A DNA stretch of 64,000 nucleotides, from the NCBI RefSeq assembly GCF_001194135.2, contig NC_068986.1:81341485-81405484 (forward strand). The letters are read 5' to 3'. Of the stretch, positions 12,596-49,754 are shown in pieces. Origin of the DNA: Octopus bimaculoides (taxonomy: Eukaryota). Below the pieces are notes generated by a model. The model ran no database searches and was not told the origin of the DNA. It saw nothing but the letters and a program-made list of their open reading frames with translations. Made by a program: the position numbers and the translations under genes. The first letter of the stretch is position 1. Each line of letters begins with the position of its first letter.

Positions 12596-12893
12596 ATGAA
12601 GATTAAAAAGAAGCATGTCGATCTATCGGCAGTTAGTCATTACCTTAGACACGGACAATATCCTGAAGGACTATCTGACTCGGACAAACGGTGTGTAAGA
12701 AAAAGATCCAAGGATTTCAGATTGAAAGCTGGCGTGCTATACTTTGTGCGAGATCCGAAAAGTGACCCGAGCAACTCAAGCGGAGCTGAGAGCGACTCAG
12801 AACGGCCTGCAACAGAACAAGTCTGGAGAGAAGTGCTGCATAAAGCGGAAGAAATTAGAAAAGCTTTTCTTGAATGCCACGTGGACAACCAAG
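12596..12893 (+). CDS. Exon 1: YPYY-type motif and first His of H2C2 module 1
   Basis: [50 protein letters not shown]...[11 protein letters not shown]; donor AAG|GTAAAT; resembles the GIN1 N-terminus. Confidence 0.88.
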
Positions 12894-13610
12894 GTAAATG
12901 TATATTTGTAACTCGATCACACGCACGCCATCAACAGAAAACTATCTTTTGTTCTATTTAATCTCCATCCTTTTACAATAGGAAGCTATGATTGTATTTT
13001 TAAATGTTTAACTTCAACTTGCCTGTCATGGTGTTAATTTTCTAAGTTAATGTCCCTGTAGATTCATAACGGTCGCTATATTTCGTCTCTACTGTCACTG
13101 GCGCTAAAATAAACAATACACGCTCTTAACTAATCAAACATTATTTCCCATCAGTCTGTTTGTTCTTTGATTAACTTTGCAAAGGTGAAGATTACAACGT
13201 TTTAGTACCACTTCACTCCCAATTTACGTGTTTAATTGGAATATTAGCTTGGAAGGGTGTCAAATTCCTTCTGTTTTCATTCCATTCCTGTCAATGTTGC
13301 TATATTTTTAAACGGTGTAAACCCATAAGAACCTACACTTAACACTATATTGACCCATTTATATCATCTGACCTGTTTCGTTGACCTAATCATACCCGAG
13401 AAGCACATCTTTATATTACACGTACAATATATTTACTTGCAATGTATATTAATTAATATAAAACAATACAATAATTTACAAAATATTTCATGCTCTTCAA
13501 AATATATTTGAATTTCTTTGAGCCTGCATGATGTAAATTTATAAAAACGTAGCAACATGCAATTCTGATGATGTCTATAAACACTGCATCACATATTCTG
13601 CGATGTCCAT

Positions 13611-13650
<40 letters not shown>

Positions 13651-14183
13651 ATGTATATATATCTGAAATGCTGAGATAGTGAGATTGGTTGTGCAGTATA
13701 GAATTTCAATGAAGTTTAATAGAAAACTCTTCGAGCAGGGATCTGCATACTCAGCTTCGAAGAAATAATGTTTTGTTTATCATCATCATCATCATTTAAC
13801 GTTCGCTTTCCAGGCCGGCATGGGTTGGATATATATATATATATATATATATAGGGATGGTCATTTTATGTATGTGTGTGCACTATATATATATATATAT
13901 ATATATGGGTGTGTGTGATTTGAAAGCATAAAACTTCACTAATCACTTAACCATTATTCCGACTATCTCTTTTATGATCTATCATTCGAAGATCAGAGGT
14001 GGCCAACATGGAGTAATAATAATGTTTTCAGTGTCTAGAGAATATATCTTAATATTTTGTATTGGGTACGGTTTCCTTCCTGTTCGCACTATCTTTCGTG
14101 ATTGTGTGTGCGTGTATATAATTTATGTGTGTGCATATATTTATATGTATTTGTATGCATATATATTTATATGTATTTATGTA

Positions 14184-14223
<40 letters not shown>

Positions 14224-17200
14224 TATATATATATATAATACACACACATACATATGATGTGTGCATAGAAATTTAGAGAAATAGGAATATACAGCATAGA
14301 GGATAGCTAAAAGTTCCTACAGGACAACTTACTGAGAGTTGCAGACCAAATCAGTAGCTAATGTGAAGTTCCATCCAGGCAGAGAATGACATGATGGTGA
14401 AACAGATTAGACAAAGTCATAAAAGCTAGGAGACTGACTAGAGAATTGGAATCTGGTACCTAAAAGAGATGATAGGTGACAGATTTATGTGGCAAGAGGA
14501 GAAGCAGAAAGTAACTGGTTTGTCAATGTTATACAGCATGTGGTTTATCAGAGATAATGAGGTGTTGGTAATTTTGGAAAGAGAGAAGCATAGAAGTGTT
14601 ACTATGAAATACTACTAAATGTGGAGGATACTTGGGAAAAAGAGAGTTTTCCTGATGTGAACACAGCTGGGAGACATGTTATTTTAGTTAACAGTGGTAT
14701 AATAAGCAGACTAATTAAGGATATGAAGACAGAAAAAGCTCCTGGTCTATCAGAGACCCTTAAAATATTTGGTAGAGTGGGACAGCCTAGTCACCAGTAT
14801 AGTTAACTAGGTTGTACAAGAAGGTACTATACCCATCAGTTGGTGTAGCCGCATTGTAGTCACCTATTACAAGGCTAAAGGAGATCCCTTAGAGAGAAGT
14901 AATTAACAGACGTATCAGATCTGTGGTCTGGGTCTGAAAGTTATAGAAACTGTTACAGCTCAACTAATTAGACAAAATTAGCCTAGATAAGATATAGTTT
15001 GGTTTTGTGCCAGGGAGAAGTATATCTGAGAAGACAATTGCAGGAGAGGTAGTAAGTCGAAAATAAACAGTCATGCTTGGCATTCATTGACCTGGTGTAT
15101 AGACTTTAACAGGGTCCCTGGATCCCAGATCTGGTGGTTACTGCAAAAGCTAGGGGCAGCTAAATGACTGGTGAGAGTTGTTCATGCCATGTACAGGAAT
15201 GCTGTCAGTAAAGTGAGAGTTTGCAATGAATTTAGTGTTGGTACAAGTTCACTAGGGTTTGATTCTCAGTCCCTTCCTATTCATCATTGTCCTCCAGGCC
15301 ATTACAAAAGAGTTCATGAACAATTACCCTTGGGAACTCCTCTATGCTGTTGACTTTGTTCTAAGCTGATTCTATAATAATTAGAAAAAAAAATTCAATG
15401 TGTGGAAGCAAAATGGAGTCAAAAGGCCTTAAAGTTAACTTAGCATAACTCAAAGTTCTAGTAAGAAGGAAAACGGACATAAGACTAAATCACTTCATGT
15501 AAATGGCTTTGTTTGATATGTAAAATAGGTGTAGGCAGAAATTCTTTACAGTATACCCAGTGCAGGCTATGGGCACATAAGTGGTAAAGAAGGGGAGACT
15601 GTTCTGAAAGTGTAGCTACTAGAATAAGAGCTGACTGGTAAAAGTTCAAAGAGCTCTCTGTTGGTTGCAAAAGGCTTTTCTCTCTCTCTCAATGAAAAAT
15701 GTATGACATTTGTGTATGAACAGTAATGCAACATGGTTGTGAAATGTGGGCTATGAATGTGGAGGATGTGAAAACTAAGAACAAATGGTGTTACCGTTCC
15801 CTGATGGACATGCAATGTCGGTGTACATGTATGACAAGGTGAAAATGTGTTGAGAAAAAAATTAGACTTAACAGGCAAAAACTGTGCCAGTATGGTCATA
15901 TGGACTGTAGATTGTATGGATGGGGACAGCTGCATAAAGAAGTATTGATCATTAAATCAGGGTGAAACTTGTTAAAGAGGAATACCTGGGAAGATGCGAG
16001 ATGAAGTCATGAAGACTGATCTCAAGATATTGAGCCTCACAGAGGAGATAACAGTAGACCAAGATGCTTGGTCTTGAGAAGCATCTTGTACATCTCAAGA
16101 TGTACTTGAGAAGACTTGTACATCTCGGCCAAAAAAAGGAAGTCATAAAAGTGTGTTTTTTGTGTCTATGCTCCTACACCCACTGTCCTTGTCAAGCTTT
16201 CCCCTATAACTCATCTTCTTAACATCCATTCCTCCATTGCTTTTCTGACCTTCTACCTATGGTATTGTTCATTCAGTTGCTAAAATTATATGAGAGCAAA
16301 GCTTCACACAGTTATCCCTCTCTTAATATCATTTCTAACCACTTTATTTTCCTCCTGAGCTACATCTTATGACTGTTGTAACTCAACCATAGCACCCTCG
16401 TATGTATGTCATCAATGACCCCCACCCCAGCTTTGTCACTCTGCATCCCTTTCTTTGTCCCCACACTTCCCATCAGCTCTTTATTTCTCCTCTGTGTATA
16501 TATTATACTGCCGCCTAACACTTCCACTTCCTCTTCTCTGACCCCCTCCTATTTCCTTCACCTCCCCACTCCAAAACTGATATTTTCCCCTGACCATGCC
16601 CCCACCCTTGATCACCATTCACTGCATTCACTTTTATCTCCATCTCTAACCATATGTCACTCTCATTTAATATACTCTTGTGAACTTATCCATTTTGTAT
16701 GTTGAGGGTATGCCCTGAGACCTCATCACCACCATCTATTTTCCTCTTTCCAGTTGTGGGTAGCCATGTGTCTCTTTTTACAACAAGATACCTGTTCATG
16801 TTCCTTTATCATACTTTAGTCTCTCAACAGCTGGCAACTCACCCCAGTGGGGCTTGTCTTGTGAGTTACTTGGTGGCCTACTTAGTGCTTGTGACATGAA
16901 AAGAGTGCTCAATACAGTCTGTAGAGTGGTTGGCATTAGGAAGGGCATTCAGCAGTTGAAACCATGCTAAACATAGGAGTGTGACACACTTCTCCAGCTT
17001 GTCAGATCCTGTTAAACTAACAAAGATGGAAATTAAATGATGATGGATATGATGTGTGTGTGTATGTACATTTATACATATATATATGTATATGCTGATA
17101 CCATGTAAAAGCATCTGTGCTGGTGCTATGTTAAAAGCACCCAGTACTCTCTGTAAAGTGGTTGATGTTGGGAAGGACATCCAAGCATAGAAACCATGCC

Positions 17201-17749
17201 AAAACAGGCAAATAGACAATTGGCCAGCTCCTGTCAAACTGTCCAACCCATGCCAGCATGGAAGCAGATATTAAATGATGATGTCTTTTTATTCATCAGA
17301 ACTCTTTCTAGAAGCTGGAATTGGATAATACCAATAAGTGTTACATGTTCTTTAAGGAAGTCTTCCATGTTTTTACTGTTCCACTTATATATTGTATCTG
17401 TAAAGTGCTTGTTAGCTGGTCACTTTCTTTGCTTCAAAACCTTAGCCTTTTCAGATTGTCATTTAAATATTTACTAACATAACCAATAATTACCATTATA
17501 AATATGGATTTATTGTAGGAGTAATGAAGCAGCTGTCATTAGATATTCTCCTTCTTGTTAATTTTGGAAGAGATGTTCACATTAATGATGTTTCTTTTTT
17601 GTCTCAAATAACTATATCAAGCATGTTTGTAATCGCTAGAAGTTTTGATGGAAATGTTTCTGTGATATTCTATGCAGTGATATGTATGCATTGTATATTC
17701 TTTTGGCAACATCATGTTGCAAAGGGTGGTAGTAGGTAGTATCTTGAAT

Positions 17750-17792
<43 letters not shown>

Positions 17793-20700
17793 NNNNNNNN
17801 NNNNNNNNNNNNNNNNNNNNNNNNNNNNNNNNNNNNNNNNNNNNNNNNNNNNNNNNNNNNNNNNNNNNNNNNNNNNNNNNNNNNNNNNNNNNNNNNNNNN
17901 NNNNNNNNNNNNNNNNNNNNNNNNNNNNNNNNNNNNNNNNNNNNNNNNNNNNNNNNNNNNNNNNNNNNNNNNNNNNNNNNNNNNNNNNNNNNNNNNNNNN
18001 NNNNNNNNNNNNNNNNNNNNNNNNNNNNNNNNNNNNNNNNNNAATTCTGTAACCCTTTAAAATGGAAAATAAGAAAGTTCATTTTTGGCACTTGATACTT
18101 TTCTTTTTCCGTAAAAGGAAAAATGCCTCACAAGCAACCAAAGAAATATGCGCAGTTTACGGTGATGTTTCTTTATCCGAAAGAACGGTACGGAAGTGGT
18201 TCGCAAGGTTCCGAGCTGGAGATTGTAGCCTTATTGAAAAAGAGTGATCAGGCTGACCTTCCACTACAGATGATGACCAAATCAAGTCATTAATTGAGAA
18301 TAACCCACATTGCACAACCCGAGAATTGGCAGAAAGCCTCAACCTATCAAAATCCGTCGTTCATGAGCACCTGGTAAAGCTTGGGTACACAAACCGCTAC
18401 AATGTTTGGGTACCACATGAGTTGAATGAGAAGAACCTTTTGGATCGCTTTTCTAGCTGTGATTTGCTTTATAAACGGAATGAAAACGTGCCTTTTTTAA
18501 AGCAAATTGTCACAGGTGATGAGAAATTGATTATCTACCAAAATGTTCAGAGAAAGCGATCCTGGAGTAAGCAACATTAGCCACCCCAAAGTGGGTTTTC
18601 ACCCTAAAAAAGTCTTGCTTTGTGTCTGGTGGGATTGGAAAGGAATTCTGTACTATGAGCTTCTCCCAAGTAACCAGACAATTAATTCTGAGAAATACTG
18701 CACACAACTGGACAAGTTAAAAGCAGCAATTCAAGAGAAACGTCCAGAATTGGCCAACAGGAAGGGTGTTGTTTTCCAACGTTATAATACAAAACCGCAT
18801 GTTTCTTTGGGAACCAGACAAAAATTGCTGCTGCTCGGCTGGGATGTGTTACCCCACCCTCCATATTCACCAGATATTGCTCCTTCGGATTTCCACTTAT
18901 TCAAGTCTCTGCAGAATAGTCTTAATGGTAAAAATTTCNNNNNNNNNNNNNNNNNNNNNNNNNNNNNNNNNNNNNNNNNNNNNNNNNNNNNNNNNNNNNN
19001 NNNNNNNNNNNNNNNNNNNNNNNNNNNNNNNNNNNNNNNNNNNNNNNNNNNNNNNNNNNNNNNNNNNNNNNNNNNNNNNNNNNNNNNNNNNNNNNNNNNN
19101 NNNNNNNNNNNNNNNNNNNNNNNNNNNNNNNNNNNNNNNNNNNNNNNNNNNNNNNNNNNNNNNNNNNNNNNNNNNNNNNNNNNNNNNNNNNNNNNNNNNN
19201 NNNNNNNNNNNNNNNNNNNNNNNNNNNNNNNNNNNNNNNNNNNNNNNNNNNNNNNNNNNNNNNNNNNNNNNNNNNNNNNNNNNNNNNNNNNNNNNNNNNN
19301 NNNNNNNNNNNNNNNNNNNNNNNNNNNNNNNNNNNNNNNNNNNNNNNNNNNNNNNNNNNNNNNNNNNNNNNNNNNNNNNNNNNNNNNNNNNNNNNNNNNN
19401 NNNNNNNNNNNNNNNNNNNNNNNNNNNNNNNNNNNNNNNNNNNNNNNNNNNNNNNNNNNNNNNNNNNNNNNNNNNNNNNNNNNNNNNNNNNNNNNNNNNN
19501 NNNNNNNNNNNNNNNNNNNNNNNNNNNNNNNNNNNNNNNNNNNNNNNNNNNTTATCTCCCTTGAAAACACGTTCATTGTTTCCATGTAACCTATGGTGGC
19601 ATTGCTGTTTCCAAAGTTTATTTTTGTTTCCTATTAGTAATTTTACTCTATCTTAAAATGAGCTGCTTGGCAGAGGTCTGCGGAGGATGACATGACAAGC
19701 CTTGGCTATTGGGATCGACTCAAAAAGCTTCAGATGATTCCTGTTTTTAAAGATTTTTTTTTTTTTCGGAAATCATATGGCTGTGTTATTTTTTTTTTAC
19801 CCCCGCCAAGGAGGTTGTTTTTGCTAGCATTGGTTTCGTAAATTGGGCGATTTTCAGCATGCGTGTATATGGGTGGAAATGAGCTGCTTGGTGGGGGTTT
19901 GCGCTCTCTGAGTGCTTTTCTAGTTCAACACTATTTTCATTCATGCAACTTATGCTTGAAAACATCTGAGTGAGAGACAGTGGATGCCTGGGTCTGAGGG
20001 AGGCCTACATTGCCAGATGTTACCATAGTTATCATATGCACAGCTGCCCAATGTCCAAAAATTGATTTTTTAATTTATTTACTTTTTTATTTATTTTTTT
20101 GTGGTCATAAGTGTGGATGTGGTCATAAGTGTGGATGGTTGTAAGTGTGGAAGCTGTATTAATATTTAGCAGAATTAACAAAGTGATTCAAGGTCCAAGA
20201 GTTTCATGCGTTGTTTGATAAGTGCTGCCAAAGCAAGAAACTCTTAGACCTTGAGTCACTCTGTTACTTCTGCTAAATATTAATAAAAAATATACATATA
20301 CTCATATTTTGAGTTCTATTTTTTCTGTTTGCATCAACAGACCTATATGTATATATATGTGCTAGTGTCACATAAAAGCATCCATACCATTGCCACATTA
20401 AAAGAACCCAGTATATGCATGTATACGTAGGAGATTCTTCAGCTATGTTATTCCATTGCAGAAATTTGTTTTTGCTTCTGTAAATGGTCACATTTAGTGG
20501 TGAGTTATTTATCTGGTAGGGATTTGTGATGCTATTATGAAAAACCTTGATATTAAATTATCTTCTTTCGTATTCCTGAGTCTTGTGAGGCTGAGAATGC
20601 AGAGACCAGTTGGTCTCTACCACCAATGTAATCCAAGGGATTATTTAGATGTCATACTGTCTTAATAAGATTCTGATTTGTAGAATATTTGCAATTCATT

Positions 20701-23700
20701 ATCATAATATAATTACAACAGCCAATTGGCACAGGCATGGTTGTGTGGTTAAGAAGCTTACTTTCCACTCACATAGTTTTGGGACCTGTCCCACTGCATG
20801 GTACCATGAGCAAATGTCTTCTAATATAACTCCATGTCAGCCAGAGCCTTGTCTGTAGATTTAGTAGATGGAAACAGAAAGAAGCTTATCATATATATAT
20901 ATGTATGTGTGTGCATGTGCACACACACACACACACACATAAAAAGCACTCAGTCCACTCTGTAAGGTGGTTGGTGTTAGGAAGGGCATCCAGCCATAAA
21001 AAGCTTGTCAAAGCAGACAGTGAAGCCTGGTTCAATCTTCTGCCTAGTCAACCTGTCTAACCCATGCCAGCATGGAAAATAAACGTGAAATGATGATGAT
21101 GACAACTCATGTTTGTGTCTCTTTGTCTTGGTATTGTATGATTGTTGTAAATATGTGTCATTGTCATACAAGCAGTGTCATTCATTTCCGGTATTCTGTG
21201 AAATCATGTCTGTCCTTGGGGAAATATGATCTTGGAAACAGGTGAGGATAGTGAAAGAAGGGCATCAGGTCACAGAAAATATACCTTAATAAACTCTGTC
21301 TGACCTATGCAGGCATGGAAAAGTAGACATTAAAATCATGATGATGATGAAACAGACCTAATAGATAAAAAAAAAAAAGTATATCTTTTGTTGTTAATTA
21401 ATGCAGCAGCAGTATTTTAATGTCCACTTTTATTGGCAAATTATTACATTTTGCCACTTTTTCTAAATCTTTCTCTAGTAATGCAAACAATGTAATATTG
21501 GATATTCTATAATTGTCTTCTATTGTTAATTACTAACTGGAGACTTATATAAAATCACAAGAGTCATATGATATGCATTCTATAAAAAGTGTCAGCCTGT
21601 AACTTCCAAAGTATGAAATACTTCTATGGTTGAATATTGATTTCTTGAAATTGCAGATTACAAGCAAGATATGAATTGTAGAGAAAGGAGTTAAGTTGAC
21701 TGCAGTACTTGATAGGTGTTTATTTTATCAACCTCAGCTGAAATCAAGGCTAAGTTGACCCCACAAAGATTTGAAATGAAATTCTAAAAGAAATGTAGCT
21801 AAATACTGCAAGATAAATCTATCAACCAGCTCTGCTCTCTACTGACAACAGTCTATTATTAGAAGTGATCCTTTTGTAGGTTGACATATGAAAGAAAAAC
21901 ATGGCTGGAAGAAAATTCCTGAGGATTTCTCTCATTCATTATCATGCATATACTCTCCATGTTGCTATGAGTTGGACTGGTCTGTGTTAGTTCTTATTGA
22001 GTATTAATGCCTTTTTACTCTGGTCAGGGACTTATCTTCCTTGTACATTCCATTTTTGGTCTGGTTTCTACAGCTGAATGCTCCCTGACACTAATGATTC
22101 AACGGAGTCATTAGTTGCTTGTTGCATTTTATTGTGGCACCAATGCTAAAAGAAGTTGTTGTCTCTTTTGCAAAGCTAAAGAGTCCTCATTTGCCTGTTT
22201 TCTCCATTTGTTCAAGATGTGACTGAGATGATTTATAAAGAACCGGAACAAGAAGAGAGATTTTGATGGGAGATAGAGTGACAGGGGGGGGGGCGATGAT
22301 GGATGAGAAACAGCTACATATATATTATTGGTGTGCAAATTGACTGAAAGATATGACAAGGGAAGGAGGAGGAACAGAAGTGAGAACGAGTGGTGGATGT
22401 CAGCTATGAAAGAGTACTATGAGAGTGTGGTGGCTAGTGATGAATGTTAGGTGGTGCTCTAGGAAATGATCCAACTACCAAATTGTTTCATGCAGTGTGT
22501 CTTCCTCCACCACTACCGTTGAGTAAAAACTGGTCATCCATGGAGTTGATGAAATTCAACAACTGATCATCTCTGACTTGAATATTAAACTAACAAATAT
22601 TAGAGCAAAATCCAGAAAGAACTGCATAATTAGGGATTACATTGGAATACCTCGCTTACATACCTGCCTGAAGTTATAGCCTCATTCAGGCATATTGAGA
22701 AAACCATGCATCTGCCAAGCATAATGTAATGGCTATTTATGTATCCAAGAAATGATTGACCTATGGGCACATGCCAGCATCTCATCCAACTTTAACTGTG
22801 TTCTTCTAAAAAAATGTTTTTCATTTTGATTGAGCTGGATCCAAATCCAAACCCATTAGATTGACCTTTTTGAGTTCTACCAAGGCACTCGCATATGGTT
22901 AGCCTGGGATAAAGTTAGGCATGCAAATTGAATTGTGTATTAAACTTGTTCTGATTTGTCACCCTGAAGCTACATATTGTAGCCTCCTTGAATCTTGACT
23001 CAGTACTACATGTTTCAGCTTATGTGGTGATGGACAAATCTGAAAACTAGCCAAATCAGGTGACATGTGGAAAAGAGATGCAAGCTGGCCTGATGATATC
23101 AAATCAACAGTGGGTAGCAATGCAAAAGCCCTGAGAAACTAAACAAAAACTATATACCATCCCCTATGAATCATGATAAGCTTAAATCCAAGTACAAATT
23201 ACTGTTTTTAAATACCTGCAGTTTATGCAGCAAAGTTCACCCTTTTGACTCTTGTGGTAAAAGTATTGAGCCTGATTTCTGTTATTTACCACTACTTCTG
23301 AAACTGTTATCAGCATCACTACTGTGGAACTGTCAGGTGACTTTGATCATGCTATGATCATTACCAATTTGTCTCTGAGTCACATGCAAAGCACCAGTAC
23401 CAAGTAAATACATCTTAGAAACCATAAAAGTGTGATTTGGGAGACTGCAGAAAAGGATGGCAAGGTACTGAATGTAAACACATGAAACAGAACAGAGAAT
23501 CATAGGAAAAGGCAGTCAAGCAAGTGACTAAATAGGCAATGCTTAAATTTGAGCAATGCATAGCATCCAACCTAGATAATAAAGTGTTCTGGGGAAATGT
23601 GCATTCAAAATAGAGGCCTCTCTCTCCTGTCATTCGTACCTGCAATCCCCACAGAGTTCAGATTATTGATGGATCCAAAGAGTGCACAGAGCTCATTACA

Positions 23701-26700: not shown

Positions 26701-26734
26701 TACAATTTTTTTTTTTTTGTCTAACCTCTTTCTT

Positions 26735-26776
<42 letters not shown>

Positions 26777-29417: not shown

Positions 29418-29468
<51 letters not shown>

Positions 29469-34333: not shown

Positions 34334-34364
<31 letters not shown>

Positions 34365-40300: not shown

Positions 40301-43300
40301 ACTTTGAAAGGAAGATCATTTAAGTAATTCTCTTCACTCTATCTTTTCTGTCTCTACTACAACAGTTGTCCTTCTCAAATAAATACTCAAAAAATGCCTT
40401 CACCACCCAAGACCACTTTTATCCTTGTGTCACTCCCATCCCCACCTTTACTGTTTTACCTTTCATTGGATGTTAATTCTCTGAAATTCCTGCAGACATT
40501 GATTTACAGATGTTCATGTTGAACATAAACCTTATGTCAGAGTCCTTTCAAATGTCATTATGGGCATTATCCTTACCTCCTTATTTAGACAAAAAAAAAA
40601 CCCCTGCTCTTTGAAGTCAAAACTGAAATAAAATACCAAAATCTTACATGAATCTTAATTTGGTACTTGTTTGATAATAATATCCCTAGGTAAGCTCTGA
40701 TCCAGTAAGGATCTTATGATTTAAAAGTATAAAGCAAAGACATAGGACTACATTATTCAGTATATGCTTCCTTTTTAAAATGGTAAGGTGTAATTTAAGA
40801 CGGAGTAGCTGCTTGCTGGTCAAATGATGTGTAGAGGTTCCCTATGTTGACTCATTGATTTAGTTCTTGATTATTATACTAGCTCCCTAACTTGCACTTT
40901 ATATCAATGTGATGAGATCCTACTCAAATATCTCTTTTTAACTGAGCAAAACATGTTCTCAGGTTGCTACTTGGGTAGTGATTATCCTGCATTGGTCTTA
41001 GATATAAACAATACTCAAATTGACTCCCCCACTCTCTTCAATGTAAACATTATTTCATTCGTTCATTTACTTCTACAGATTTTATCCCCCTCCTTAGGAC
41101 CTTCTATCATATTACCCGAGGACTCTTTATTACTTACACACACACACATAGCTTTCTCCCCTCTATACTACCACCTTTCACAATCATATTTAAGAACAAT
41201 AGTACTCTGATTCTCCTTTATCATAATGCTAATAAAACTGTCAGCGATACACCTTCCAGTAAAATTTCCTGCAGTACTTTTCTCCTCTTTGTAATCTATA
41301 AGAAGTTACATGAAACTATATAACAGGTACTTCAAAACTGTACCTTGTTGCTGTGTACTCTGAAACTAAATTAAATGTAGCTGATGAGAAATAATTCTAT
41401 AAAATGTAGTCCTGGTTTCTTTGCTACATTCTGCCAATATGTTGGAAATTTGGTTGGATTTCAGTGTAGATGGTATGTAATCAATTAGTTGAGAGGAATA
41501 TAAGCTCTTATTATTATGGCCAGGTTGTAGTAGTGTTAAACTAGGTGAAGAGGAGACCATGTATCCATGGGCTAGAACTCTTTGCCAGTTGTTGGTTTTC
41601 TATTAAAGGTGGTCTCTTGGGCTTGTGTATAAGAAGGATTTGATCAGAGCTGAAATATTTTCTGGTCCTGAAGCAGACATTTATTCTTTCAGTCAGAGTT
41701 GTCTATGTTATGTATTTAGAGTCACTAGGAATGCTAATCAGAGATTGTGGGGCCTAGCATATGTTGTGACTTTGACAGTTTTGTGTGTTGTCCAAAACTG
41801 GAGAGAGTGAAGTATAAAATTATCATATTGCCAATATATAATAATTTAACTTTGTATCCACAATGAATAGAGTGAACTGAGTACATACCATACCCACTTA
41901 TCCAATGTATAAAGTTAAACCAGTACTTAACCATTTCCTTACTTCAGGTATCCATCGTGGTGTGGAACGGACCAAAGAACTCCTGCATGGTAGCTACTAT
42001 TGGATTGGTATGAATCGTGATCTGAAAGAATTCCTTGATAAATGTTGCTTAACACGAGTCTTCCCCGAAGATAAGAAACTTAAATCTCAAGAAGAGAAGC
42101 TCTCTAAGTTTGCCGAGTTCTTCCAAATGGATATCAGTCCTTTCATTGTAAGTAGATGGCCTCAACCATTTCATAATGTATTCACAACTCTCATGTGTTA
42201 TACCCTTTATGTTGCCAGTACCGCCTGACTGGCCTTCGTGCGGGTGACACGTAAAAGCACCCACTACACTCTCTGAGTGGTTGGCGTTAGGAAGGGCATC
42301 CAGCTGTAGAAACTCTGCCAAATTAGATTGGAGCCTGGTGTTGCCATCTGGTTTCACCAGTCCTCAGTCAAATCGTCCAACCCATGCTAGCATGGAAGGC
42401 AGACGTTAAACGATGATGATGATGATTTAGACAGACATTCACTTCAAAATTTTTTTATCTACCCCATGAAAATTTAACCATATTTATGTGCTAAATGATT
42501 CATTCAAGCATACAAAACATACATGCATTCATTCATACACACACACACACACACACACACATAAATATCATAAATAAATTCTATAAACATTTATTGGGTG
42601 GTTTATTATTAGACACTCACAGAGACAACTAGTTAGTGTAATACATGCCTGCAGACACAAGCACATGCACATAGCAGCCTTATGGCATTACAATTAAGGA
42701 CAGCATATCATCATTTTAAGTCTGTTTTTCATGCTGGCATGAGTTAGGCTGTTTATCATACTTTGAGTTGAATCAGTTCTTTATTCCTATTTACCGACCT
42801 CCTGGGTGGACTGGAAGACCATGTCTTGGTTATACAATAATACAATAATCACATACAGAAATCATAAAACTACAATACTATAACTTTGAAAAATAATATA
42901 ACATGATTTTTCCAAACTTTTCAGAAAGAACTGCAGTAGAAAATCTATGTAACCAACCATGTACATTACTTTGTGTTTTGCAGTTGTGGTTCTCATAGTG
43001 ACATTAACCAATACATGGAGTTATTTAGCTAACCAGCTAAAACATTTAGTTCAATTATGTTTTTTGACTCTTGTAATAAATCAGAAAGATCAAGTAATGT
43101 TATTTCTGATTCTCTAATAATTATTGTTGTTTATTTCAGAGTTTAGAGCAGACTGTTGAGCTAAAAGGTGAAAAAGAGGAAGATGCAACAGTGCTGACAT
43201 CTGTTGGTCTTAAAGTGAAGAGTCCTTCCCCACCTCCAACAGAGGAGCTTGAAACAAAGACACTGACCAGTCAGGAAGAAAGTAATATAGAAGATGTCTT

Positions 43301-46300
43301 CTTAAATGCAGTACAGGTTGTGGAGCCGGACAGTATAACAGCACAACCAGAAGAAACAACTCTAGCAGAGAGCAATGCTATTCTGTCACAAGAGATCACT
43401 GATTCCAGTAAAACAATTGAGGTTTTGTCACCTTCTGTTAAGACTTACAATGAGGTTGCTTGTAACACAGAGGACAGTGACAATCTTGATGAGGTCGATG
43501 ATGTGGAACTAGATCAACCAAAGGCAATTGTAAAGAAGATGAACATTGAAACAATTAAAAATCAAACTTCACGGCGCCAACAAAAGAGTGTTACTGTACA
43601 TGTACCAGAAAAGACTGTCGAAGATCACTTGAGTGAAGAGGTGCAGAATGCTGTCGACAATATAAAACCTGATGTTAGTGACATCCATATAGCTGATGAT
43701 GTGTCTGCATTAACGTCAATGATTCAGAGGAGACAGAATGCAGCAGAGAGCAAGATACAAGAAACTATTGTGTCGACAGTTGAAAGTGATGTGGAGATGA
43801 CAAAAGCTGAAGAGATTGTCAAGGAAATTGAACTGGCTGAAGCTGAAGAATTTGAAGAATCAGTGGATGGCAACCAGACTGAAAATACTAGCATGGTAGA
43901 CAGTAAGGCATTTTTAACAAAGAAAACTAAAGGGAAACGTATGAAACGGAAGAAACAGCTTGCTTGTAATATTTGTGGCTTAATGTTTGGAGGCCCTGTA
44001 ACATTGCAAGGTGAGTATATCTCTTTATATTGTTATAAAAAGTATATGCATACATATGTGTATTTGTATGTGTGTAAAATCTCTTATTGTGAGTTGTGTT
44101 TGACTTCCTACAGTCCCATATTGTAAAGTGTATGTTCATTTGGTCTTTATTTTTTTACCTCTGCAAGATTATTACCTATTATTGAGGCATTGTTTTACAG
44201 CCAGATGCCTTTCTTTTCAATAATTCTTTCTTGTTTTTCAAGCAAGGCATATGGACATCTTATTCCACACAACTTCAAAGTTGCAAGCCCACAGATGGCC
44301 TGTAACTGAGTGATTTTTTTGAAACATGCAAATGTAAATAAATACACATGCACACATACATACATGTATATGCATAATCTTTTTTTCTTTTCATTTTAAT
44401 GTCCATTTTTCCTTGCTTACATTGGTCAAACAACATTTATTGAACCAGATTTCTATGGTCAGATGCCTTTCCTGTGTAACCCTAACCTATTTCCAAGCAA
44501 GGTAATATTACCCCATTGCTCGATATATTTTCATAGAAAATCGGAAATAAATAACATCAATTGTATAATGATGTTACTTATTTACAACTATTACTCATCA
44601 AGATAAGGACACACATACATGTACACATATGATGGGTTTCTTTCACTTTCTTTATCGTCATCATTTACCATCCACTTTTCCAATGCTTGCATGGATGGAG
44701 TTGATTGAAGCTAATTTTCTACTGCCAGATGCCCTTTCTGATACCAACCATCACCTATTTCCAAGCAGGTAATGTTTATTTATGACCAGGCATTTTTTTG
44801 CTGAATATGGGAAATGACTGCCTTTGCTTATATGATGGTAACACTCATTTACAGCTATCTCATGATGTTAAGACAAGGGCCCCACCACCGCCGCACACAT
44901 ATACAATGAATTTTTTTCACTTTCCATCCATTCATAAGGCTTTGATCAGCTTGGAGCTATAGTAGAAGACACTTAACTCAAGATGCCACACAGTGAGGCT
45001 GAACCTAAAACCATGTGGTTGAGAAGCAAACTTATTAACCACTTGCCACGCCTGCACCTATACACCAGGACTAATAAAAGAACATGCCACATCAGATTGT
45101 AGTCTGGTGCAACCTTCTAGCTTGCCAGTCCTGGTCAAACTGTCCAATCCATGCCAGTTTGGACTACAGATATTAAATGATGATGATGATGATGATGATA
45201 ATGATTTGCACGTGTGGGTGGGGTATATGCATATGTATTGCTATAATATTTTCATTGTAAAACTCCAAGGTGTGTGTACACTAATAATGTAGGTTGTATA
45301 CAACTTATTTTAATGTGTGTATCTGTATACATTCTTGTGACGTGTGTATCCCTCCCTTTGTGGATTTATTGTTTAGCTGCATGTTGTTCCAAGTATGACC
45401 ATCCTGGCAGAGTTGTGACAGTGAGACTATGTTACTGAACCATGGTGACAATAGGACAGAATTATTGTATTATGATGACAATGGAATTGTGTTATTGTAC
45501 TTTGATGACGGTAAGATAATGTTATTTTGCTGTGGTCTAGTGTTGATATGATCTCATTTTTCTTTTGCCAGTTCATATGAGTACACACTCTGGTCAAAAG
45601 CCTTTTGGTTGTGATGTTTGTGGCAAGCGATTTACTGAACGGAAATATGTTCGTATCCACATGAGACGTCACACAGGAGAGAAACCATATCTGTAAGTAG
45701 AATTTGTATCAGGACTGTTGCATGTTGTCACTGTTTAACTTCTGGTCAAGCTTGATCCAACAAACCTTTGATGAAAGGCATTCCATCCTTGTCTGTTTGC
45801 CCTTCCTTTTCTTTTCTGCCAGTATATTGTTTTTGAAGGTTATGCTTTCCATTGTGTCATTTCCTCCCCCATTTTTAAAGGTTAAATGTGGTGATGAAAA
45901 TTTGGCTGCTATTTCTTCCAGAACAAGCAATCACATCAAGATTTCCTTGGCACATTATGGCTATTATTTGTTATGATGTCATACAGTTGTGTCAATACAG
46001 ATATGTTGTGTATAGAGTTGTTTGTTTTGATGTTACATTTATATTAGAATTATCACATCTTTTACTGCTGTCCATTGCAGATGCTTTTTACTAAGACTTA
46101 TAGGAAGGAAACAATTTAGTATGTTGTGGTTTCCTTGTTTTGTGCATACCTATAATGCAATGGTTACTGCCAATGTTAGGTTTCATGCTGTATGAGTATT
46201 TCTCATGGTGACCCCGCATACATAACGTAGCTATTACTGTGACCTAAGTGTAAGCATTCATCTTCAGAAACTACTTGAGTTACCAGTCACTTGCTAATTC

Positions 46301-49300
46301 TGAACAAAACTCAAGTAAGATATACACTGGAGTTCTGCTCACATATCTGAAGCGGTGCTGTTGTGATACTTCCAGGAAAAGACTGATTCCTTCATTAACA
46401 TACAATAACTTTTAGTCCATAGGTATTCTGTCTTCTCGATTTCTCCTAATGCTACTACAGGTACCACTTTGGTTCCAGAGCCTTTCTAGATCACTGATTT
46501 TTCCAAACAAGGAGTGGTCACCTGGGTCAACACACTCTAAATTTAACAAATATATAATTTACTTCAATAATTAAATGAAATACAGGTACTTGTATGTTAG
46601 TATAAATGATACAAGTTTATTAATACTCTACTGTGCAAAGTACCAGATAACTAGCCTGGTGGCTTTGGAAATTTGATGTTCCTGCTCTAAAATTAGTGCT
46701 GATTATAAGAGGTTCCATATCATCAAACCTATTTGGTATTTTTGTCACTTGTACTGTATCATGTCCTGCTGATCCTACACTGACAGCTTCCTCTTCTTCC
46801 TCCCACTTTTTTTTTGGGGGGGGGGGGGACAGAATCCTTAGCATGTCCAGCAAAATGCTTAATTTCATTTCTTTCAGCTCTTTATGTTCTGAGTTCAAAT
46901 TCCACTGAGGCCAACTTAGTCCTTCATCATTTCAGGGTCAATAAAATAGGTACTAGTCAACACCTTAAAACATTGCTGGCCTTCTTCAAAAATTAGAATA
47001 ATTTCAACACATTTTTTCATGCTAACATGATCACAGGATATGGCCTAGTCACCAATTTAGTAAATCAAGTTGTCCAGGAAGGAGTATATCCAATGGCTGG
47101 TGTAGCAGTATTATAGTCAACTGCTACAGAGAAAGGTGATGTCTCAGACAGAAGTAATTACAGGGGTATCAACTTACTGGACCAAGTGATGAAAGTTACA
47201 GAAAGGGTCATAGCTCAACTAATTGGGAGAAGAATTAACATGGATGAGATGCAGTTTGGTATAGTGCCAGGGAGAAGCATTACTGATGCTATTTTCCTAG
47301 TTAGGCAACTTCATGAGAATGCTTTTGACAGGGTTCTTTGCTCACTTATCTGGTGGTCAGTGCAAAAGCTAGGATAAATGAGTGATTGGTGAGAGCCATC
47401 CAAATCACGTACAGTGATGCTGTTGGTAAAGTGAAAGTTGGTGTTAAATACAGTGACAAATGTGTGCAGCTACGAGTTCATCAAGGATTGGTTCTCAGCT
47501 CCATCTTGTTTATCATAGTCCTCCAGGCCATAACTGAGGAATTTAAAACTGGTTGCCTTTGGGGGCTCCTCTATGCTAATGACTTTCTTATAGCTGAATC
47601 TCTCAGAGTTAGAGAAGAAATTTCAGGTATGGAAGTAAGGACTGGAATCTAAAGGCCTTAGAGTTACTTAGCAAAGACCAAAGTACTTGTAAGCAGGAAA
47701 ACAGACAAATTCCTAATCCCTTCAGGGAAATCGCCCTGTTCAATATGTAGAAAAGGTATAGGTAGAAATTCCATTCAGTGTACCCAGGGCATGCTATGGA
47801 CACATAAGAGATGCAGTGGAATCACAAGAAGGTTAAATGAGAAAATAGTATTTGTGTGTGGTTGATGGGCAGGAACAATAAATACTAAGGATATACAGGA
47901 AGTAGATTTCCTCAAATGTGCAGGGGCTCCTGCAAGTTTTTCTTGGCAGCATGTACCATACTTGCAGTAATTGTTTTAGAAGCCTATGTAGTTGTAAGCA
48001 AACATAAACACCCTTTCAACCATCCCTTCCTTGACCCTGTATAACATGCAGGATGTGACAGGTGAAGGATAGAGGAAGGAAGCACTTGGATGGTAATCAT
48101 TTTCAGTTGAGTAGACTATGTGCATATAATTATCATTTTAACATCTACTTTTCCATGCTTGCATGGGTTAGATGAGTGTGTTGGGGGAAGAGTTTTCTAC
48201 AGCAGGTTGCTCTTCCTGTCACTAACCCTACCTGTTTATAAGTGAGGTAATAATCTTTGTTTAACATCTACCTTCCATGCTGGCATCAGTTGGATGGTTT
48301 GACAGGAGCTCACCAGGTAGAAGACTACTCCAGGCTACTGTGTCTGTTTTTGGCATGGTTTTTACAGCTAGATGCCCTTCCTAACACCAACCACCCCACA
48401 GAGTGGACTGAGGGCTTGTGGTGTATTTTAATATGTATGTACTGTTGCTGAAATGCTGTAGTGGTTTATGTATACTCACATGTATTTTGGTGCATATATA
48501 CAAAATATTATGTGCATGCTGCTTTGTCTAATAGAATATTGACTCCCATGTATTTGTTGAGAGTTTCCAATAAAAGTTCATTTAAAGTGTTTCCAATTTT
48601 TTTTCTATTTGTGTATAGTGAAAATATCTTTGACCTCCAATTTGCAGGTGCAGTGTTTGTGGTAAAGGTTTCCCCAGGACCCAGTCTCTTTTAGCTCATA
48701 TGTCAGTTCATGAAAAAGACAAGGATCACATGCAGAAGTGTGAAATATGCAATCGACCATTTGCTTCTGATAATCGTTTGAATGCACATATGGAAGCCAA
48801 GCATCCTGCAGTTCCTAAAGTTTACAAATGTGCAGAATGCAGCCGTGTGTTCACTGCAATGAGTAAGTAATAGAATACTTGATCTTCTCTACTGCTACCT
48901 TTTTCTGTATGAAGTATATGTTAAAAGTATTGGGTTAATTGGATGAAGATGTTTAGTTTGATACATTAATTTTTATGTTAAACGAGAGCTGTGATGTTTA
49001 GATATAAGCCATGGAGTAAAAAGTTTTAAAATAGTTATTTGCTACTGTCTTTTGGTATGAGAAGCAGGGTGCTCTGCATACCTCAGTCTGTTTAGTTGAT
49101 GCCTTCGACTTTAGGATTTAGTGGTGAACAGTAACCAGGACACTGTTCTCTTTATGATGTGTACACAAGTGTTTTGTAATCAGCTTACTTAAATTAATTA
49201 CCTAAAATAATAAAATATATTCATTACATGTCATTTTTAAAAAAATCTTTTTAGGGAGTCTGAAGCGCCATATTGAGGCCCACATGGGTTTGAAACGCTA

Positions 49301-49754
49301 TGAGTGCCAGCATTGTGGTCGACGCTTTTTACGGAAAGAATATCTACGTAGCCATGCAGCTCAGCACACAGGAGAAATATACCCTGCACCTAAACGAAAG
49401 AAGCCTGACTTGCCATGTCCTCAGCTTAAGATAACTGTTGGTTCAAACACCTATTCTGTATTTACTTCTGATGCCACTGCTGCTGTCACTCCAGATCAAC
49501 AAGAAACTTGGGTTGCTGCTGAACTTGTCCAAAATGAAGAACAGATACAGGACCCAACCGAGACAGCACGAGCCACTGAAAGTGTTGAGCAGAGTGTTGA
49601 AGCACCTTTGTTTTTTATTGCTCCTAACCAAGTTGAATATGAGGTTGAGTGTACCTCAAGTGGTGGCACTGAACTGACTGAAGCAGATCTCACTGCTATC
49701 AACATTCTTGCTCAAGCTACACTCAATGCACCAAACACTCTGCCACTCACATGA
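12596..49754 (+). CDS. 14-exon gene, 1424 aa: domesticated Ginger/GIN1-like integrase (3x YPYY-H2C2, degenerate rve core) fused to AT-hook and 6 C2H2 zinc fingers
   Basis: Exons 12596-12893, 31276-31526, 33106-33275, 34100-34230, 34771-34924, 35029-35719, 37113-37338, 38375-38556, 39313-39577, 41948-42147, 43140-44010, 45572-45692, 48648-48862, 49255-49754. All introns are GT-AG. Phases 1,0,2,1,2,0,1,0,1,0,1,2,1 join without a stop and sum to 4275 nt. Motifs run continuously across junctions (H-x4-G^x-H, R^YG, R^EP, C2H2 fingers). Confidence 0.9.
14570..16060 (+). mobile_element. Decayed RTE-clade LINE reverse transcriptase
   Basis: Remnants of KAPG, EG-IP..W, KGD-L-R-NY, AF-DL and LLYA motifs with many frameshifts. 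Confidence 0.8.
17793..18042. other. Assembly gap (250 N)
   Basis: Run of N after a (TA)n tract. Confidence 0.99.
18043..18938 (+). mobile_element. Mariner transposase pseudogene in intron 1, ends hidden in assembly gaps
   Basis: MENKKVHF...[50 protein letters not shown]. Two in-frame TGA, one frameshift, and DNA motif changed to YNT. Confidence 0.93.
18939..19551. other. Assembly gap (613 N)
   Basis: Run of N truncating the mariner. Confidence 0.99.
19797..19923 (+). mobile_element. Short Helitron/Helentron-like non-autonomous element
   Basis: Starts ttacccccgccaaggagg; ends with hairpin GCGCTC-TCT-GAGTGC then TTTT-CTAG. Confidence 0.55.
23990..25000 (-). mobile_element. Decayed RTE-type LINE, 3' half
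   Basis: - strand reads [14 protein letters not shown] (QG motif) and [17 protein letters not shown] (RTE C-terminal motif). Confidence 0.75.
25289..25662 (-). mobile_element. Young (GAT)n-tailed SINE or short non-autonomous RTE-type element
   Basis: catcatc...tttaacgtccgctttccatgctagcatgggttggacg...gatgcccttcctaacgccaacc; near-identical to the other copies listed. Confidence 0.85.
26730..27110. repeat. (CT)n plus (CAC/CAT/TAC)n low-complexity tract
   Basis: Directly visible; produces spurious His/Pro/Thr-rich ORFs. Confidence 0.85.
28344..28648 (-). mobile_element. Young (GAT)n-tailed SINE copy
   Basis: Near-identical to 25289-25662. Confidence 0.85.
29820..30192 (-). mobile_element. tRNA-headed SINE with (CA)n core; older copies at about 7730-8095, 20725-20900, 32350-32520, 38810-38940, 44870-45060, 63120-63260
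   Basis: On the - strand: tggctatgtggtaagtagcttgc...ggttcagtcccactgcgtggcaccttgggcaagtgac; recurs many times. Confidence 0.8.
31276..31526 (+). CDS. Exon 2: second half of H2C2 module 1
   Basis: Acceptor tttctttgacag. (G)[36 protein letters not shown]...INHFWQK; donor AAG|GTAATC. Confidence 0.92.
32860..33070 (+). mobile_element. TTAA-type MITE; inverted copy at about 53585-53750
   Basis: ttaacctttagcattcagattactctgt... is shared with the reverse complement at 53585-53750. Confidence 0.6.
33106..33275 (+). CDS. Exon 3: start of integrase (rve) core
   Basis: [35 protein letters not shown]...LIA(R) matches the integrase pattern W-x-x-V-x-x-D-x-x-GP...I...D-x-x-S-x-W-x-EA; donor AG|GTGAGA. 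Confidence 0.9.
33812..34057. mobile_element. hAT-type MITE
   Basis: Termini cagtggtct...agaaccactg; 8-bp TSD only partly preserved. Confidence 0.6.
34100..34230 (+). CDS. Exon 4: integrase core, RYG region
   Basis: Acceptor ttttattag; completes R-Y-G; [43 protein letters not shown]; donor A|GTATGT. Confidence 0.85.
34771..34924 (+). CDS. Exon 5: integrase core C-terminal helices
   Basis: (N)[50 protein letters not shown](R) matches the W-D...TP...GREP-like pattern; donor AG|GTGAGA. Confidence 0.88.
35029..35719 (+). CDS. Exon 6: end of core, low-complexity linker with poly-Thr/Asn, AT-hook, basic NLS-like tracts
   Basis: EPCLPLS continues the core; contains [14 protein letters not shown] and KKGNKRKKR; donor GAT|GTAAGT. 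Confidence 0.9.
37113..37338 (+). CDS. Exon 7: YPYY motif and first His of module 2
   Basis: [36 protein letters not shown]...KAAHVLENG; donor G|GTAAGA. Confidence 0.9.
37350..37574. mobile_element. TTAA-type (piggyBac-like) MITE just after the exon 7 donor
   Basis: tgaacccttttgttacca ... tggtatcaaaaggattaa are inverted termini. Confidence 0.55.
37633..37830. repeat. Degenerate 33-35-bp tandem repeat, 5-6 copies
   Basis: atgtgtaagaatgtggtactacatgatagtggtac-like units start at 37633, 37666, about 37701, 37734 and 37769. Confidence 0.7.
38375..38556 (+). CDS. Exon 8: second half of H2C2 module 2
   Basis: (G)[35 protein letters not shown]; polypyrimidine acceptor ttttcttcctag; donor GCT|GTAAGT. 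Confidence 0.92.
39313..39577 (+). CDS. Exon 9: YPYY-like motif and first His of module 3
   Basis: [12 protein letters not shown]...[10 protein letters not shown]...[24 protein letters not shown]; donor CAG|GTAATA. Confidence 0.88.
41948..42147 (+). CDS. Exon 10: second half of module 3 (CC in place of CxxC)
   Basis: (G)[33 protein letters not shown]; donor ATT|GTAAGT. Confidence 0.9.
42211..42426 (+). mobile_element. Young (GAT)n-tailed SINE copy, 64 nt after the exon 10 donor
   Basis: Reverse complement of the 25289 copy, ending gatgatgatgat. Confidence 0.85.
43140..44010 (+). CDS. Exon 11: acidic spacer, basic tract and first half of C2H2 finger 1
   Basis: 871-nt open frame rich in E/D/S/T, ending [30 protein letters not shown]; acceptor ttatttcag; donor AAG|GTGAGT. 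Confidence 0.92.
45572..45692 (+). CDS. Exon 12: end of finger 1 and finger 2
   Basis: (V)[39 protein letters not shown](L); not in the ORF track; donor CT|GTAAGT. Confidence 0.93.
47030..47930 (+). mobile_element. Decayed RTE-clade LINE RT fragment in intron 12
   Basis: [23 protein letters not shown]...[28 protein letters not shown] and LLYAND. Confidence 0.88.
48648..48862 (+). CDS. Exon 13: fingers 3, 4 and start of 5
   Basis: [21 protein letters not shown]...[22 protein letters not shown]...[11 protein letters not shown]; donor A|GTAAGT. Confidence 0.93.
49255..49754 (+). CDS. Exon 14: end of finger 5, finger 6, acidic C-terminus, stop
   Basis: (R)[37 protein letters not shown]...PNTLPLT*. 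Confidence 0.92.

Follow-up and report, generated by a model that had tools for sequence, protein, structure and literature searches.

A 64,000-nucleotide stretch of the Octopus bimaculoides genome (NC_068986.1, positions 81,341,485 to 81,405,484 of the forward strand; hereafter the window) encodes segments that resemble an integrase and, downstream of them, an array of C2H2 zinc fingers. Do these segments belong to one host gene and, if so, where did it come from and what might it do? We rebuilt the exon chain independently by listing all plus-strand stop-to-stop frames and then scoring frame-compatible GT/AG pairs between successive coding islands. The result is 14 plus-strand exons, all with a GT donor and an AG acceptor, which span 12596-49754 and join into a single 1424-residue frame with its stop codon at 49752-49754. 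The product is identical (100% over 100% of its length) to the RefSeq "uncharacterized protein LOC106874323" of O. bimaculoides, and the annotated locus (GCA_001194135.2, CM046606.1:81344080-81401238) matches the window DNA base for base. The LOC106874323 model is real and had already been annotated, without a name or a study; the 14 exons, 37-kb span and 1424 residues that an initial annotation of this DNA had proposed were rebuilt identically. Collectively, our data make it likely that LOC106874323 represents in octopus an old host gene of lophotrochozoans, present in single copy, that arose by domestication of a YPYY-bearing integrase (Ginger1/GIN-like or closely related Gypsy-like) and encodes a putative nuclear DNA-binding factor.

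One transcript carries the integrase-like and finger parts

The in-frame position one codon 5' of the ATG is a stop codon, and the same N-terminal residues open the octopus protein and its orthologs. Two other cephalopods provide contiguous mRNAs. The first encodes a 1515-residue protein (P0002) that is 60% identical to the octopus protein at 100% coverage; eight runs supply eight contigs for it (4.8-5.6 kb). All eight have the same uninterrupted 4548-nt coding sequence (CDS), preceded by 67-120 nt of leader that includes an in-frame stop and followed by a trailer with poly-A signals. SRR3011300, one of the runs, is listed in Table 1 of PMC5541922 as a whole-animal transcriptome of Sepia pharaonis. 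The second cephalopod (P0003, 1560 residues) has two such contigs. All 13 octopus junctions are gap-free in alignment to both transcripts. The integrase-like and finger parts thus lie on a single mRNA, in decapodiform cephalopods at least.

The window is AT-rich. Its two N runs (17793-18042 and 18939-19551) fall within intron 1 (12894-31275, 18.4 kb), where they bracket a Mos1/mariner fragment and leave the host frame untouched. Junction 1 (..ECHVDNQG/NHRTYDK.., the slash marking the splice) is gap-free against the two cephalopod mRNAs, and in abalone (Haliotis) and the brachiopod Lingula the counterpart of intron 1 matches in column and phase and is not interrupted by an exon. Because the junction is seamless and the abalone and Lingula introns hold no extra exon, we conclude that the N runs hide no coding sequence.

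Three YPYY-H2C2 heads and an array of zinc fingers

From its N terminus, the protein carries a first YPYY+H2C2 module, a core-like region, a linker with one RGRP, a second and a third module, an acidic spacer and six C2H2 fingers (Table 1). This domain order and the six fingers had been read off in the initial annotation, and both are borne out by Pfam, profile search and fold. Pfam finds Integrase_H2C2 (PF17921) in three stretches of the full protein (E=1.3e-29), and the pattern Y..G.YP...(K/R)R..R..a..f.l....LY(Y/F) likewise occurs in three copies. The zinc ligands of module 1 (H95, H102, C132 and C135) are invariant among orthologs, as are those of module 2. In module 3, two adjacent Cys residues replace the CxxC of the other modules in every mollusc but Pecten, in which the module is degenerate; CxxC is kept in Lingula.

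In octopus, abalone and Lingula, two exons encode each of the three units, and a phase-1 intron separates them within the Gly codon that precedes the second His (HVDNQG/NH, HVLENG/TH and HILRTG/IH). The units also match by position between species, with identities of 48% and 36% for module 1 against module 1 and 42% for module 2 against module 2. As the units pair by position between species and share the same split exon pairs, triplication of the head predates the mollusc-brachiopod split. By Foldseek, the head fold resembles the N-terminal extension and HHCC domains of the prototype foamy virus (PFV) and Ty3 integrases. In the PFV intasome, these domains touch the DNA ends and hold the multimer together.

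The finger array gives Pfam matches to zf-C2H2 (E=1.4e-20) and zf-H2C2_2 (E=3.7e-19). Six fingers are present in every mollusc ortholog (five by pattern in Pecten) and seven in Lingula. The AT-hook that the initial annotation placed in the linker fared less well: the octopus protein does have one RGRP there, but with weak flanks and without a Pfam AT_hook match, and an RGRP core is found in only 3 of 12 orthologs. The two others, in Babylonia (KKKRGRPRK) and Sinanodonta (PKRGRPAKRK), are canonical and lie in the equivalent linker; the remaining nine have no RGRP core. From this distribution, the AT-hook appears to be a patchy accessory and not a fixed feature.

The core keeps an integrase fold and appears catalytically dead

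A profile built from the orthologs matches the rve regions of Gypsy-type Pol proteins and of GIN1 at 43-51 bits per domain. In one such Pol (P0031), profile positions 177-339 correspond to residues 730-891, and Pfam rve lies at 728-824. When the same profile was used for a sequence search of the PDB, it reached the H2C2 part only (Ty3 integrase, E=0.02) and left the core uncovered. An AlphaFold2 model from a 27-sequence alignment had a mean predicted local distance difference test (pLDDT) score of 83, mostly above 87 in the core, which is ordered beta1-beta2-beta3-alpha1-beta4-alpha2-beta5-alpha3-alpha4. The top Foldseek matches were PFV intasome chains (E=2.5e-10), the Ty3 integrase 7q5b, and the intasomes of human immunodeficiency virus and mouse mammary tumor virus; core-only chains gave template modeling (TM) scores of 0.72-0.79 at a root-mean-square deviation of ~3 A. 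The modeling thus indicates that the core is a genuine RNase-H-like integrase fold.

To locate the catalytic residues, we aligned 14 orthologs with nine real integrases. Of the two catalytic Asp residues, the first survives only in the three cephalopods and Lingula (the other orthologs have Gln, Ser, Lys or Met), and the second is replaced in all 14 by Arg, Lys, Leu or Ser (R250 in octopus). The position of the catalytic Glu varies, and the orthologs share no alternative acidic triad. What is conserved in the region is the structural hydrophobic pattern and a post-core W...R...EY(T/S)P...(G)RE..(L)P segment. Judged by these alignments, the core appears to be catalytically dead, its fold retained for a non-catalytic purpose.

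The gene is conserved across molluscs and a brachiopod

An exhaustive profile search with the N-terminal 345 residues (a four-sequence alignment) returned 5508 matches, among which a top tier of 180-625 bits was sharply set off. This tier includes the gastropods Haliotis asinina, H. rubra, Patella vulgata, Lymnaea stagnalis, Bulinus truncatus, Babylonia areolata, Batillaria and Nucella, the bivalves Pecten maximus and Sinanodonta woodiana, and the brachiopod Lingula anatina, and its members are annotated as single "uncharacterized" or "hypothetical" proteins. The full-length orthologs have two to three Integrase_H2C2 matches and a C2H2 array by Pfam, and keep the order of the octopus protein from the initial Met through to a shared C-terminal tail (consensus V-x-Y-E-V/I...L/V-T/S-E-A-D-L/F-x-A-I-x-x-L-A) that has no Pfam match. 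When Lingula residues 1-681 served as the query of a word-indexed search, the matches were all retroelement Pols, with no named members from further phyla; the family as sampled comprises molluscs and a brachiopod, to the exclusion of annelids, nemerteans, phoronids and flatworms.

We reconstructed the abalone and Lingula genes (17 exons each) exactly from genomic DNA. Ten of the 13 octopus introns fall at the identical column and phase in abalone, and nine in Lingula, where one more is off by a single column; the remaining introns lie in unalignable linkers with phase-0 introns nearby. In a bootstrap distance tree of the H2C2 and core regions, 13 orthologs form one clade (93%) whose topology resembles the species tree, with Lingula outside the molluscs and with cephalopods, bivalves, caenogastropods and heterobranchs each grouped. 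The octopus assembly has one genomic place for LOC106874323. Collectively, introns and tree indicate that the gene has been inherited vertically since before the mollusc-brachiopod split. As that split is dated to the latest Ediacaran to early Cambrian, the gene would be older than ~540 million years. An octopus- or coleoid-specific innovation was rejected, because a single gene of the same architecture, introns conserved, is present in gastropods, bivalves and Lingula; with it falls the link that the initial annotation drew to the octopus C2H2 expansion.

Three observations concern individual members. The RefSeq model of H. rubra has a non-canonical AA..AG 'intron' of 109 nt in the acidic spacer (L011:31598-31706) that skips an in-frame stop; this is probably an annotation patch over an assembly error, or else a real difference, and the conserved parts are unaffected. 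Intron 5 of the Lingula ortholog (8.4 kb) holds two nested antisense Cofilin_ADF genes (L012:14657-16171 and 18245-20128, minus strand), with two more just downstream. The heterodont bivalves Dreissena (P0036), Mactra (P0039) and Mya (P0050) have proteins of ~1350-1420 residues with two to three H2C2 units: that of Mya has two Integrase_H2C2 stretches, and that of Dreissena, read directly, has no core-like region between its units and fewer fingers. These may be derived orthologs that lost the core, or paralogs.

Selection and a proposed function

We estimated the ratio of nonsynonymous to synonymous substitution rates (dN/dS) by the Nei-Gojobori method from the Sepia and second cephalopod mRNAs (dS ~0.9); between octopus and the other cephalopods, dS is saturated and dN/dS unusable. 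The ratio was 0.19 over the whole CDS, 0.07 for the six fingers, 0.10 for the C-terminal tail, 0.14 for modules 2 and 3, 0.19 for the core, 0.27 for module 1, and 0.24-0.27 for the acidic spacer (0.24) and the exon 6 linker (0.27). The finger array is the slowest-evolving part of the protein, and all parts of the gene appear to be under purifying selection. The initial annotation had expected a host gene under purifying selection and not a mobile element, and a single genomic place, the lack of terminal inverted repeats (TIRs) and long terminal repeats (LTRs), and the overall ratio of 0.19 agree with it.

We propose the following model. A YPYY-bearing integrase would have been domesticated. 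Its YPYY+HHCC unit, an exon pair with a phase-1 intron, is present three times, the first followed by an RNase-H-fold core without its catalytic triad, the C terminus carrying six C2H2 fingers and an acidic/hydrophobic tail. The finger array would bind defined DNA sequences in the nucleus. The three HHCC heads and the inert core would, most plausibly and by analogy, serve as a platform for oligomerization, nucleic-acid binding or partner recruitment, and the linker AT-hook, where present, would add minor-groove contacts. In intasomes, the homologous N-terminal extension and N-terminal domains, together with the core, mediate multimerization and DNA-end binding. The protein is thus most likely a nuclear, sequence-specific DNA-binding protein that uses its integrase parts non-catalytically: nuclear localization and sequence-specific binding are suggested because the finger array is the most conserved part and because the protein has basic patches resembling nuclear localization signals (NLSs).

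Several observations count against this reading. Support for the octopus junctions comes from the mRNAs of other cephalopods and not from octopus RNA. Pfam rve (PF00665) has no match at E<=0.1 in the whole protein or in residues 1-362, and none in seven orthologs; of the three Pfam families named for checking in the initial annotation, Integrase_H2C2 and zf-C2H2 were thus found and rve was not, and its 'rve core' stands in fold and profile homology but not in Pfam or in the second Asp. The 27-sequence alignment behind the fold held real integrases, which biases the model toward theirs, and a model from four orthologs was poor (pLDDT 55). No synteny was found within 10-kb flanks in abalone or Lingula, flanks this short being uninformative at such distances; the search for syntenic one-to-one orthologs yielded single-gene orthologs in molluscs and Lingula but no shared neighbors within those flanks. 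For every member of the family, function is wholly inferred. Finally, the dead-core Imagin of shrimp is reported to be cytosolic (PMC12863088), so nuclear action should not be assumed from the integrase part alone.

The alternative that survives best is a defense factor, in which the dead core and HHCC modules would act as a dominant-negative decoy against retroelements or Ginger elements, forming heteromers with incoming integrases or taking up their DNA ends, while the fingers tether the protein to chromatin. The integrase-derived parts are predicted to keep their fold and multimerization surfaces, the introns of LOC106874323 are full of mariner, reverse-transcriptase and SINE-like debris, and a defensive role has been speculated for GIN1, GIN2 and KRBA2 (PMC3575427). 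However, every domain evolves slowly under purifying selection (dN/dS 0.07-0.27), and orthology has stayed one-to-one, with a species-tree topology, for over half a billion years, quite unlike the rapid turnover, duplication and positive selection that mark arms-race genes; nothing points to an interaction with any integrase. We consider this alternative improbable. For the roles suggested in the initial annotation, an integrase-capture chromatin regulator or an integrase-binding restriction factor (the latter being this alternative), we found no evidence, and slow, uniform purifying selection argues against an arms-race restriction factor.

A single host gene would also be illusory if gene prediction had merged a short integrase-derived gene (exons 1-10) with an ordinary C2H2 gene (exons 11-14). 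Exon 11 does open a long, poorly conserved spacer, the octopus junctions were judged without octopus RNA reads, and neighboring genes can be fused in RefSeq models, of which the fish H2C2-THAP-Tyr_Deacylase models described below look like a case. Yet the contiguous mRNAs of S. pharaonis (8 runs) and of the second cephalopod (2 runs) hold both parts, from the same Met to the same tail; the fusion is predicted independently in more than 10 species from three mollusc classes and a brachiopod; and the spacer is itself constrained. We reject an annotation chimera, which the mRNAs contradict for other cephalopods and to which we give almost no credence in octopus.

Origin and relation to known integrase-derived genes

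Ginger1 transposases are defined by YPYY, H2C2, DDE, GPY/F, and OTU or Ulp1, and the elements have TIRs of 40-270 bp, CCGG/CCGT target-site duplications (TSDs) and multiple copies (Bao et al., 2010; PMC2836005). YPYY is found in some Gypsy integrases too, and Gin-1, Gin-2 and Ginger1-5_HM have three introns in common (PMC2836005). In the full octopus protein, Pfam found neither OTU nor Ulp1; nor was there an SH3_Tf2-1 or Integrase_p58_C match indicative of GPY/F, the core being followed by the low-complexity linker. No inverted or direct repeat pairs the two ends of the gene, and no TIR, LTR or TSD was found; the only repeats are intronic SINE-like copies and microsatellites. GIN1 and stand-alone integrases, one of them with OTU, match the extended head over profile positions 5-137, whereas Gypsy Pols match the bare H2C2 only, and this pattern therefore favors a Ginger1/GIN-like source. 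The distance tree did not separate a Ginger1-like from a Gypsy-like sister group; the phylogeny with GIN1 and integrases called for in the initial annotation recovers the orthologs as monophyletic.

We also reconstructed the tenrec GIN1 gene (7 exons), the comparison covering GIN1 only, without GIN2 and Ginger1-5_HM. None of its six introns coincides with any octopus, Haliotis or Lingula intron. Because GIN1 introns are not shared, and because GPY/F, OTU/Ulp1 and TIRs are lacking, the gene appears, from the one GIN1 compared, to be a separate and older domestication and not a GIN1 relative by descent. The Ginger/GIN1 type assigned in the initial annotation accordingly applies to the YPYY-H2C2 head, which is most like that of GIN1 and stand-alone Ginger-like integrases, but introns, GPY/F, OTU/Ulp1 and TIR/TSD speak against membership in GIN1, GIN2 or Ginger1-5.

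How does the gene compare with other host genes of this kind? Like the vertebrate GIN1 and GIN2 (PMC2836005; Chalopin et al., 2012; PMC3424704), it stands alone, has introns and encodes YPYY, HHCC and an RNase-H-fold core, and GIN1 is among its best non-ortholog matches (head 61.6 bits, core 50.7 bits). However, GIN1 has one head, a GPY/F-type C terminus and no C2H2 fingers, whereas the octopus gene has three heads, six fingers and a conserved tail, and its family is lophotrochozoan. Imagin of malacostracan crustaceans is likewise a single-copy, multi-exon, Ginger1-like integrase gene, more than 400 million years old and under purifying selection, that has retained YPYY, H2C2 and core and lost the DDE triad (Hao et al., 2026; PMC12863088). 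It has one head and no C2H2 array, unlike the octopus gene, is nested in an MMUT intron and is reported to be cytosolic in oocytes; the Imagin paper makes no mention of molluscs or C2H2 (PMC12863088). In the mammalian KRBA2 and SCAND3/ZBED9, too, an integrase/transposase core is joined to domains of the transcription-factor type (Llorens et al., 2012; PMC3575427), but theirs is a Ginger2 core without YPYY and GPY/F, their partners are KRAB and SCAN with no C2H2 array, and they are mammal-specific and far younger. Ginger1 transposons and YPYY-bearing Gypsy integrases share the order YPYY, H2C2, rve fold, and alignment with stand-alone relatives such as P0046, which has a C-terminal OTU domain, extends over the full length; the octopus gene differs from Ginger1 elements in lacking DDE, GPY/F, OTU/Ulp1, TIRs and TSD and in not being multicopy. 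In another protein, P0143 (954 residues; GCA_964058975.1, gene range 134 kb), H2C2 is combined with one C2H2 finger and with a core that lacks the Asp and carries a closely similar 'WKKIEVKIYGP' motif; together with GIN1, P0143 appears nearest to the family in the distance tree.

In the literature searched, we found no paper on LOC106874323 or on an integrase+C2H2 gene in invertebrates. The initial annotation knew of no description of the architecture but could not confirm its novelty, and no characterizing paper was found; the family itself proved widely conserved, with a dN/dS not near 1 and no multicopy, TIR-bearing state. In kind, the gene stands beside GIN1, GIN2, Imagin, KRBA2 and SCAND3; its new traits are the triplication of the head, the C2H2 array fused to it, the conservation of the tail, and its age.

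That LOC106874323 is a mobile element derived from Ginger1 or Gypsy, or was one until recently, or that its core cuts DNA through alternative acidic residues, is extremely unlikely: the first Asp is kept in cephalopods and Lingula, alternative acidic residues have been proposed for GIN2 (PMC3424704) and Ginger1 transposase genes can have introns (PMC2836005), but we reject this reading given the dead triad (second Asp replaced in 14/14 orthologs, no conserved acidic substitute), the single genomic place, the absence of TIRs, LTRs, TSD, OTU/Ulp1 and GPY/F, and the introns conserved across phyla.

The locus and its surroundings

Table 1. Exons of LOC106874323 in the window, with the parts of the protein that each encodes and exon-level Pfam matches.
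Exon	Position	Strand	Content	Pfam match
1	12596-12893	+	Start codon; YPYY motif 1 (12635-12751); first His of H2C2-1; phase-1 donor splits Gly100 codon
2	31276-31526	+	Remainder of H2C2-1 (second His, C132-x2-C135); short linker	PF17921, E=5.9e-9
3	33106-33275	+	Core beta1-beta3 and alpha1; first 'catalytic' Asp, D187 (33115-33117)
4	34100-34230	+	Core beta4/alpha2/beta5; Arg250 (34128-34130) at second catalytic Asp position
5	34771-34924	+	Core helices alpha3-alpha5 with conserved W305...R317...EYTP...RE...LP tail; catalytic Glu not conserved
6	35029-35719	+	Low-complexity linker (poly-Thr/Asn, 35378-35443); RGRP AT-hook-like core (35519-35530); basic NLS-like patch (35666-35713)
7	37113-37338	+	YPYY motif 2 (37128-37253); first His of H2C2-2; phase-1 donor, same Gly as exon 1
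8	38375-38556	+	Remainder of H2C2-2 (C672-x2-C675)	PF17921, E=2.4e-8
9	39313-39577	+	YPYY-like motif 3 (KP...LYY, 39349-39480); first His of H2C2-3; phase-1 donor, same Gly
10	41948-42147	+	Remainder of H2C2-3; adjacent Cys822-Cys823 instead of CxxC	PF17921, E=2.6e-8
11	43140-44010	+	Acidic, poorly conserved spacer (43140-43931); basic patch; first half of C2H2 finger 1
12	45572-45692	+	Second half of finger 1; finger 2 (45610-45672); TGEKPY linker	zf-H2C2_2, E=4.2e-12
13	48648-48862	+	Fingers 3 and 4; first half of finger 5	zf-C2H2, E=7.4e-12
14	49255-49754	+	Second half of finger 5; finger 6 (49305-49367); C-terminal tail motif VEYEVEC... (49632-49718); stop

Mobile-element debris lies within and around the gene. 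The Mos1/mariner fragment of intron 1 (18053-18938, plus strand; HTH_48 E=4e-22, Transposase_1 E=3.6e-24, and an HTH match) is cut off by the second N run, and 5' of the gene a mariner-like C-terminal open reading frame (ORF) at 4464-4775 (plus strand) has no Pfam match. Two plus-strand copies of one decayed non-LTR-type element, at 47117-47862 (intron 12) and 14594-15350 (intron 1), are 72-80% identical and hold broken reverse-transcriptase (RVT_1) pieces and a PHD-like ORF; the ORF at 14594-15350 has no Pfam match. A short interspersed element (SINE)-like repeat of ~220-310 nt, its copies 92-94% alike, occurs at 25302-25611, 28343-28648, 42210-42426 (inverted) and 57523-57783. Its spurious ORF recurs in ORF lists, and one copy abuts the intron downstream of exon 10.

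The neighbors are Rho_GDI in Haliotis and TEDC1 and cofilins in Lingula; in octopus none was called in the 10-kb flank, and a SAC3_GANP exon lies 12.7 kb downstream. This SAC3/GANP-family exon (62452-62832, minus strand; Pfam E=1e-8), probably joined by another at 63613-63948 (minus strand), is LENG8-like and fits the LENG8 neighbor named in the initial annotation.

Related H2C2-repeat proteins and implications

Tandem YPYY-H2C2 units ahead of a C2H2 array are also found in a sea urchin. LOC129271934 of Lytechinus pictus (L015; P0032/P0189) has four such units and eight fingers, and in each unit a phase-1 intron falls in the Gly codon that is also interrupted in octopus, abalone and Lingula. 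It differs from the octopus gene in having four units and neither a core nor the conserved tail, and the likeness does not by itself establish orthology. In fish, models from Salminus brasiliensis (P0052; L016) and Engraulis (P0037) combine three H2C2 units, two THAP domains and a C-terminal D-Tyr-tRNA deacylase domain, the last of which may be a read-through fusion. The intron of this fish H2C2-THAP gene lies in the YPYY region, near the first intron of GIN1, and not inside H2C2. By intron position, this suggests two separate lineages of H2C2-repeat host genes, of which the one with LOC106874323 may extend to the bilaterian ancestor. A crayfish protein (Cherax quadricarinatus P0047) with an ALS2CR8 (CARF-type) DNA-binding domain and two H2C2 units is another fusion of heads to a DNA-binding domain.

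It is conceivable, though we lean against it, that the YPYY-H2C2 exon pair, recognizable by its phase-1 intron, is an ancient bilaterian block, captured once from an integrase, multiplied, and kept before C2H2 arrays in protostomes and deuterostomes alike, the coreless heterodont and echinoderm forms being derived. If so, these genes would make up an unrecognized family of integrase-derived transcription or chromatin factors ~550 million years old, and the triple HHCC head would be a multimerization or DNA-clamping device taken from the intasome.

To our knowledge, host genes made from integrases have been almost exclusively vertebrate (GIN1, GIN2, KRBA2, SCAND3 and NYNRIN), joined since 2026 by the crustacean Imagin, and none has a firmly established function. 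The family of LOC106874323 would be a much older integrase domestication, made in the lophotrochozoan stem or earlier. A dead site, a conserved fold, a tripled head and fingers maintained together for more than 500 million years point to non-catalytic, intasome-type assembly surfaces placed at defined genomic sites. CRISPR is available in squid and probably in some gastropods as well. As the fingers should reveal its targets, the gene may offer a tractable route to what domesticated integrases do.

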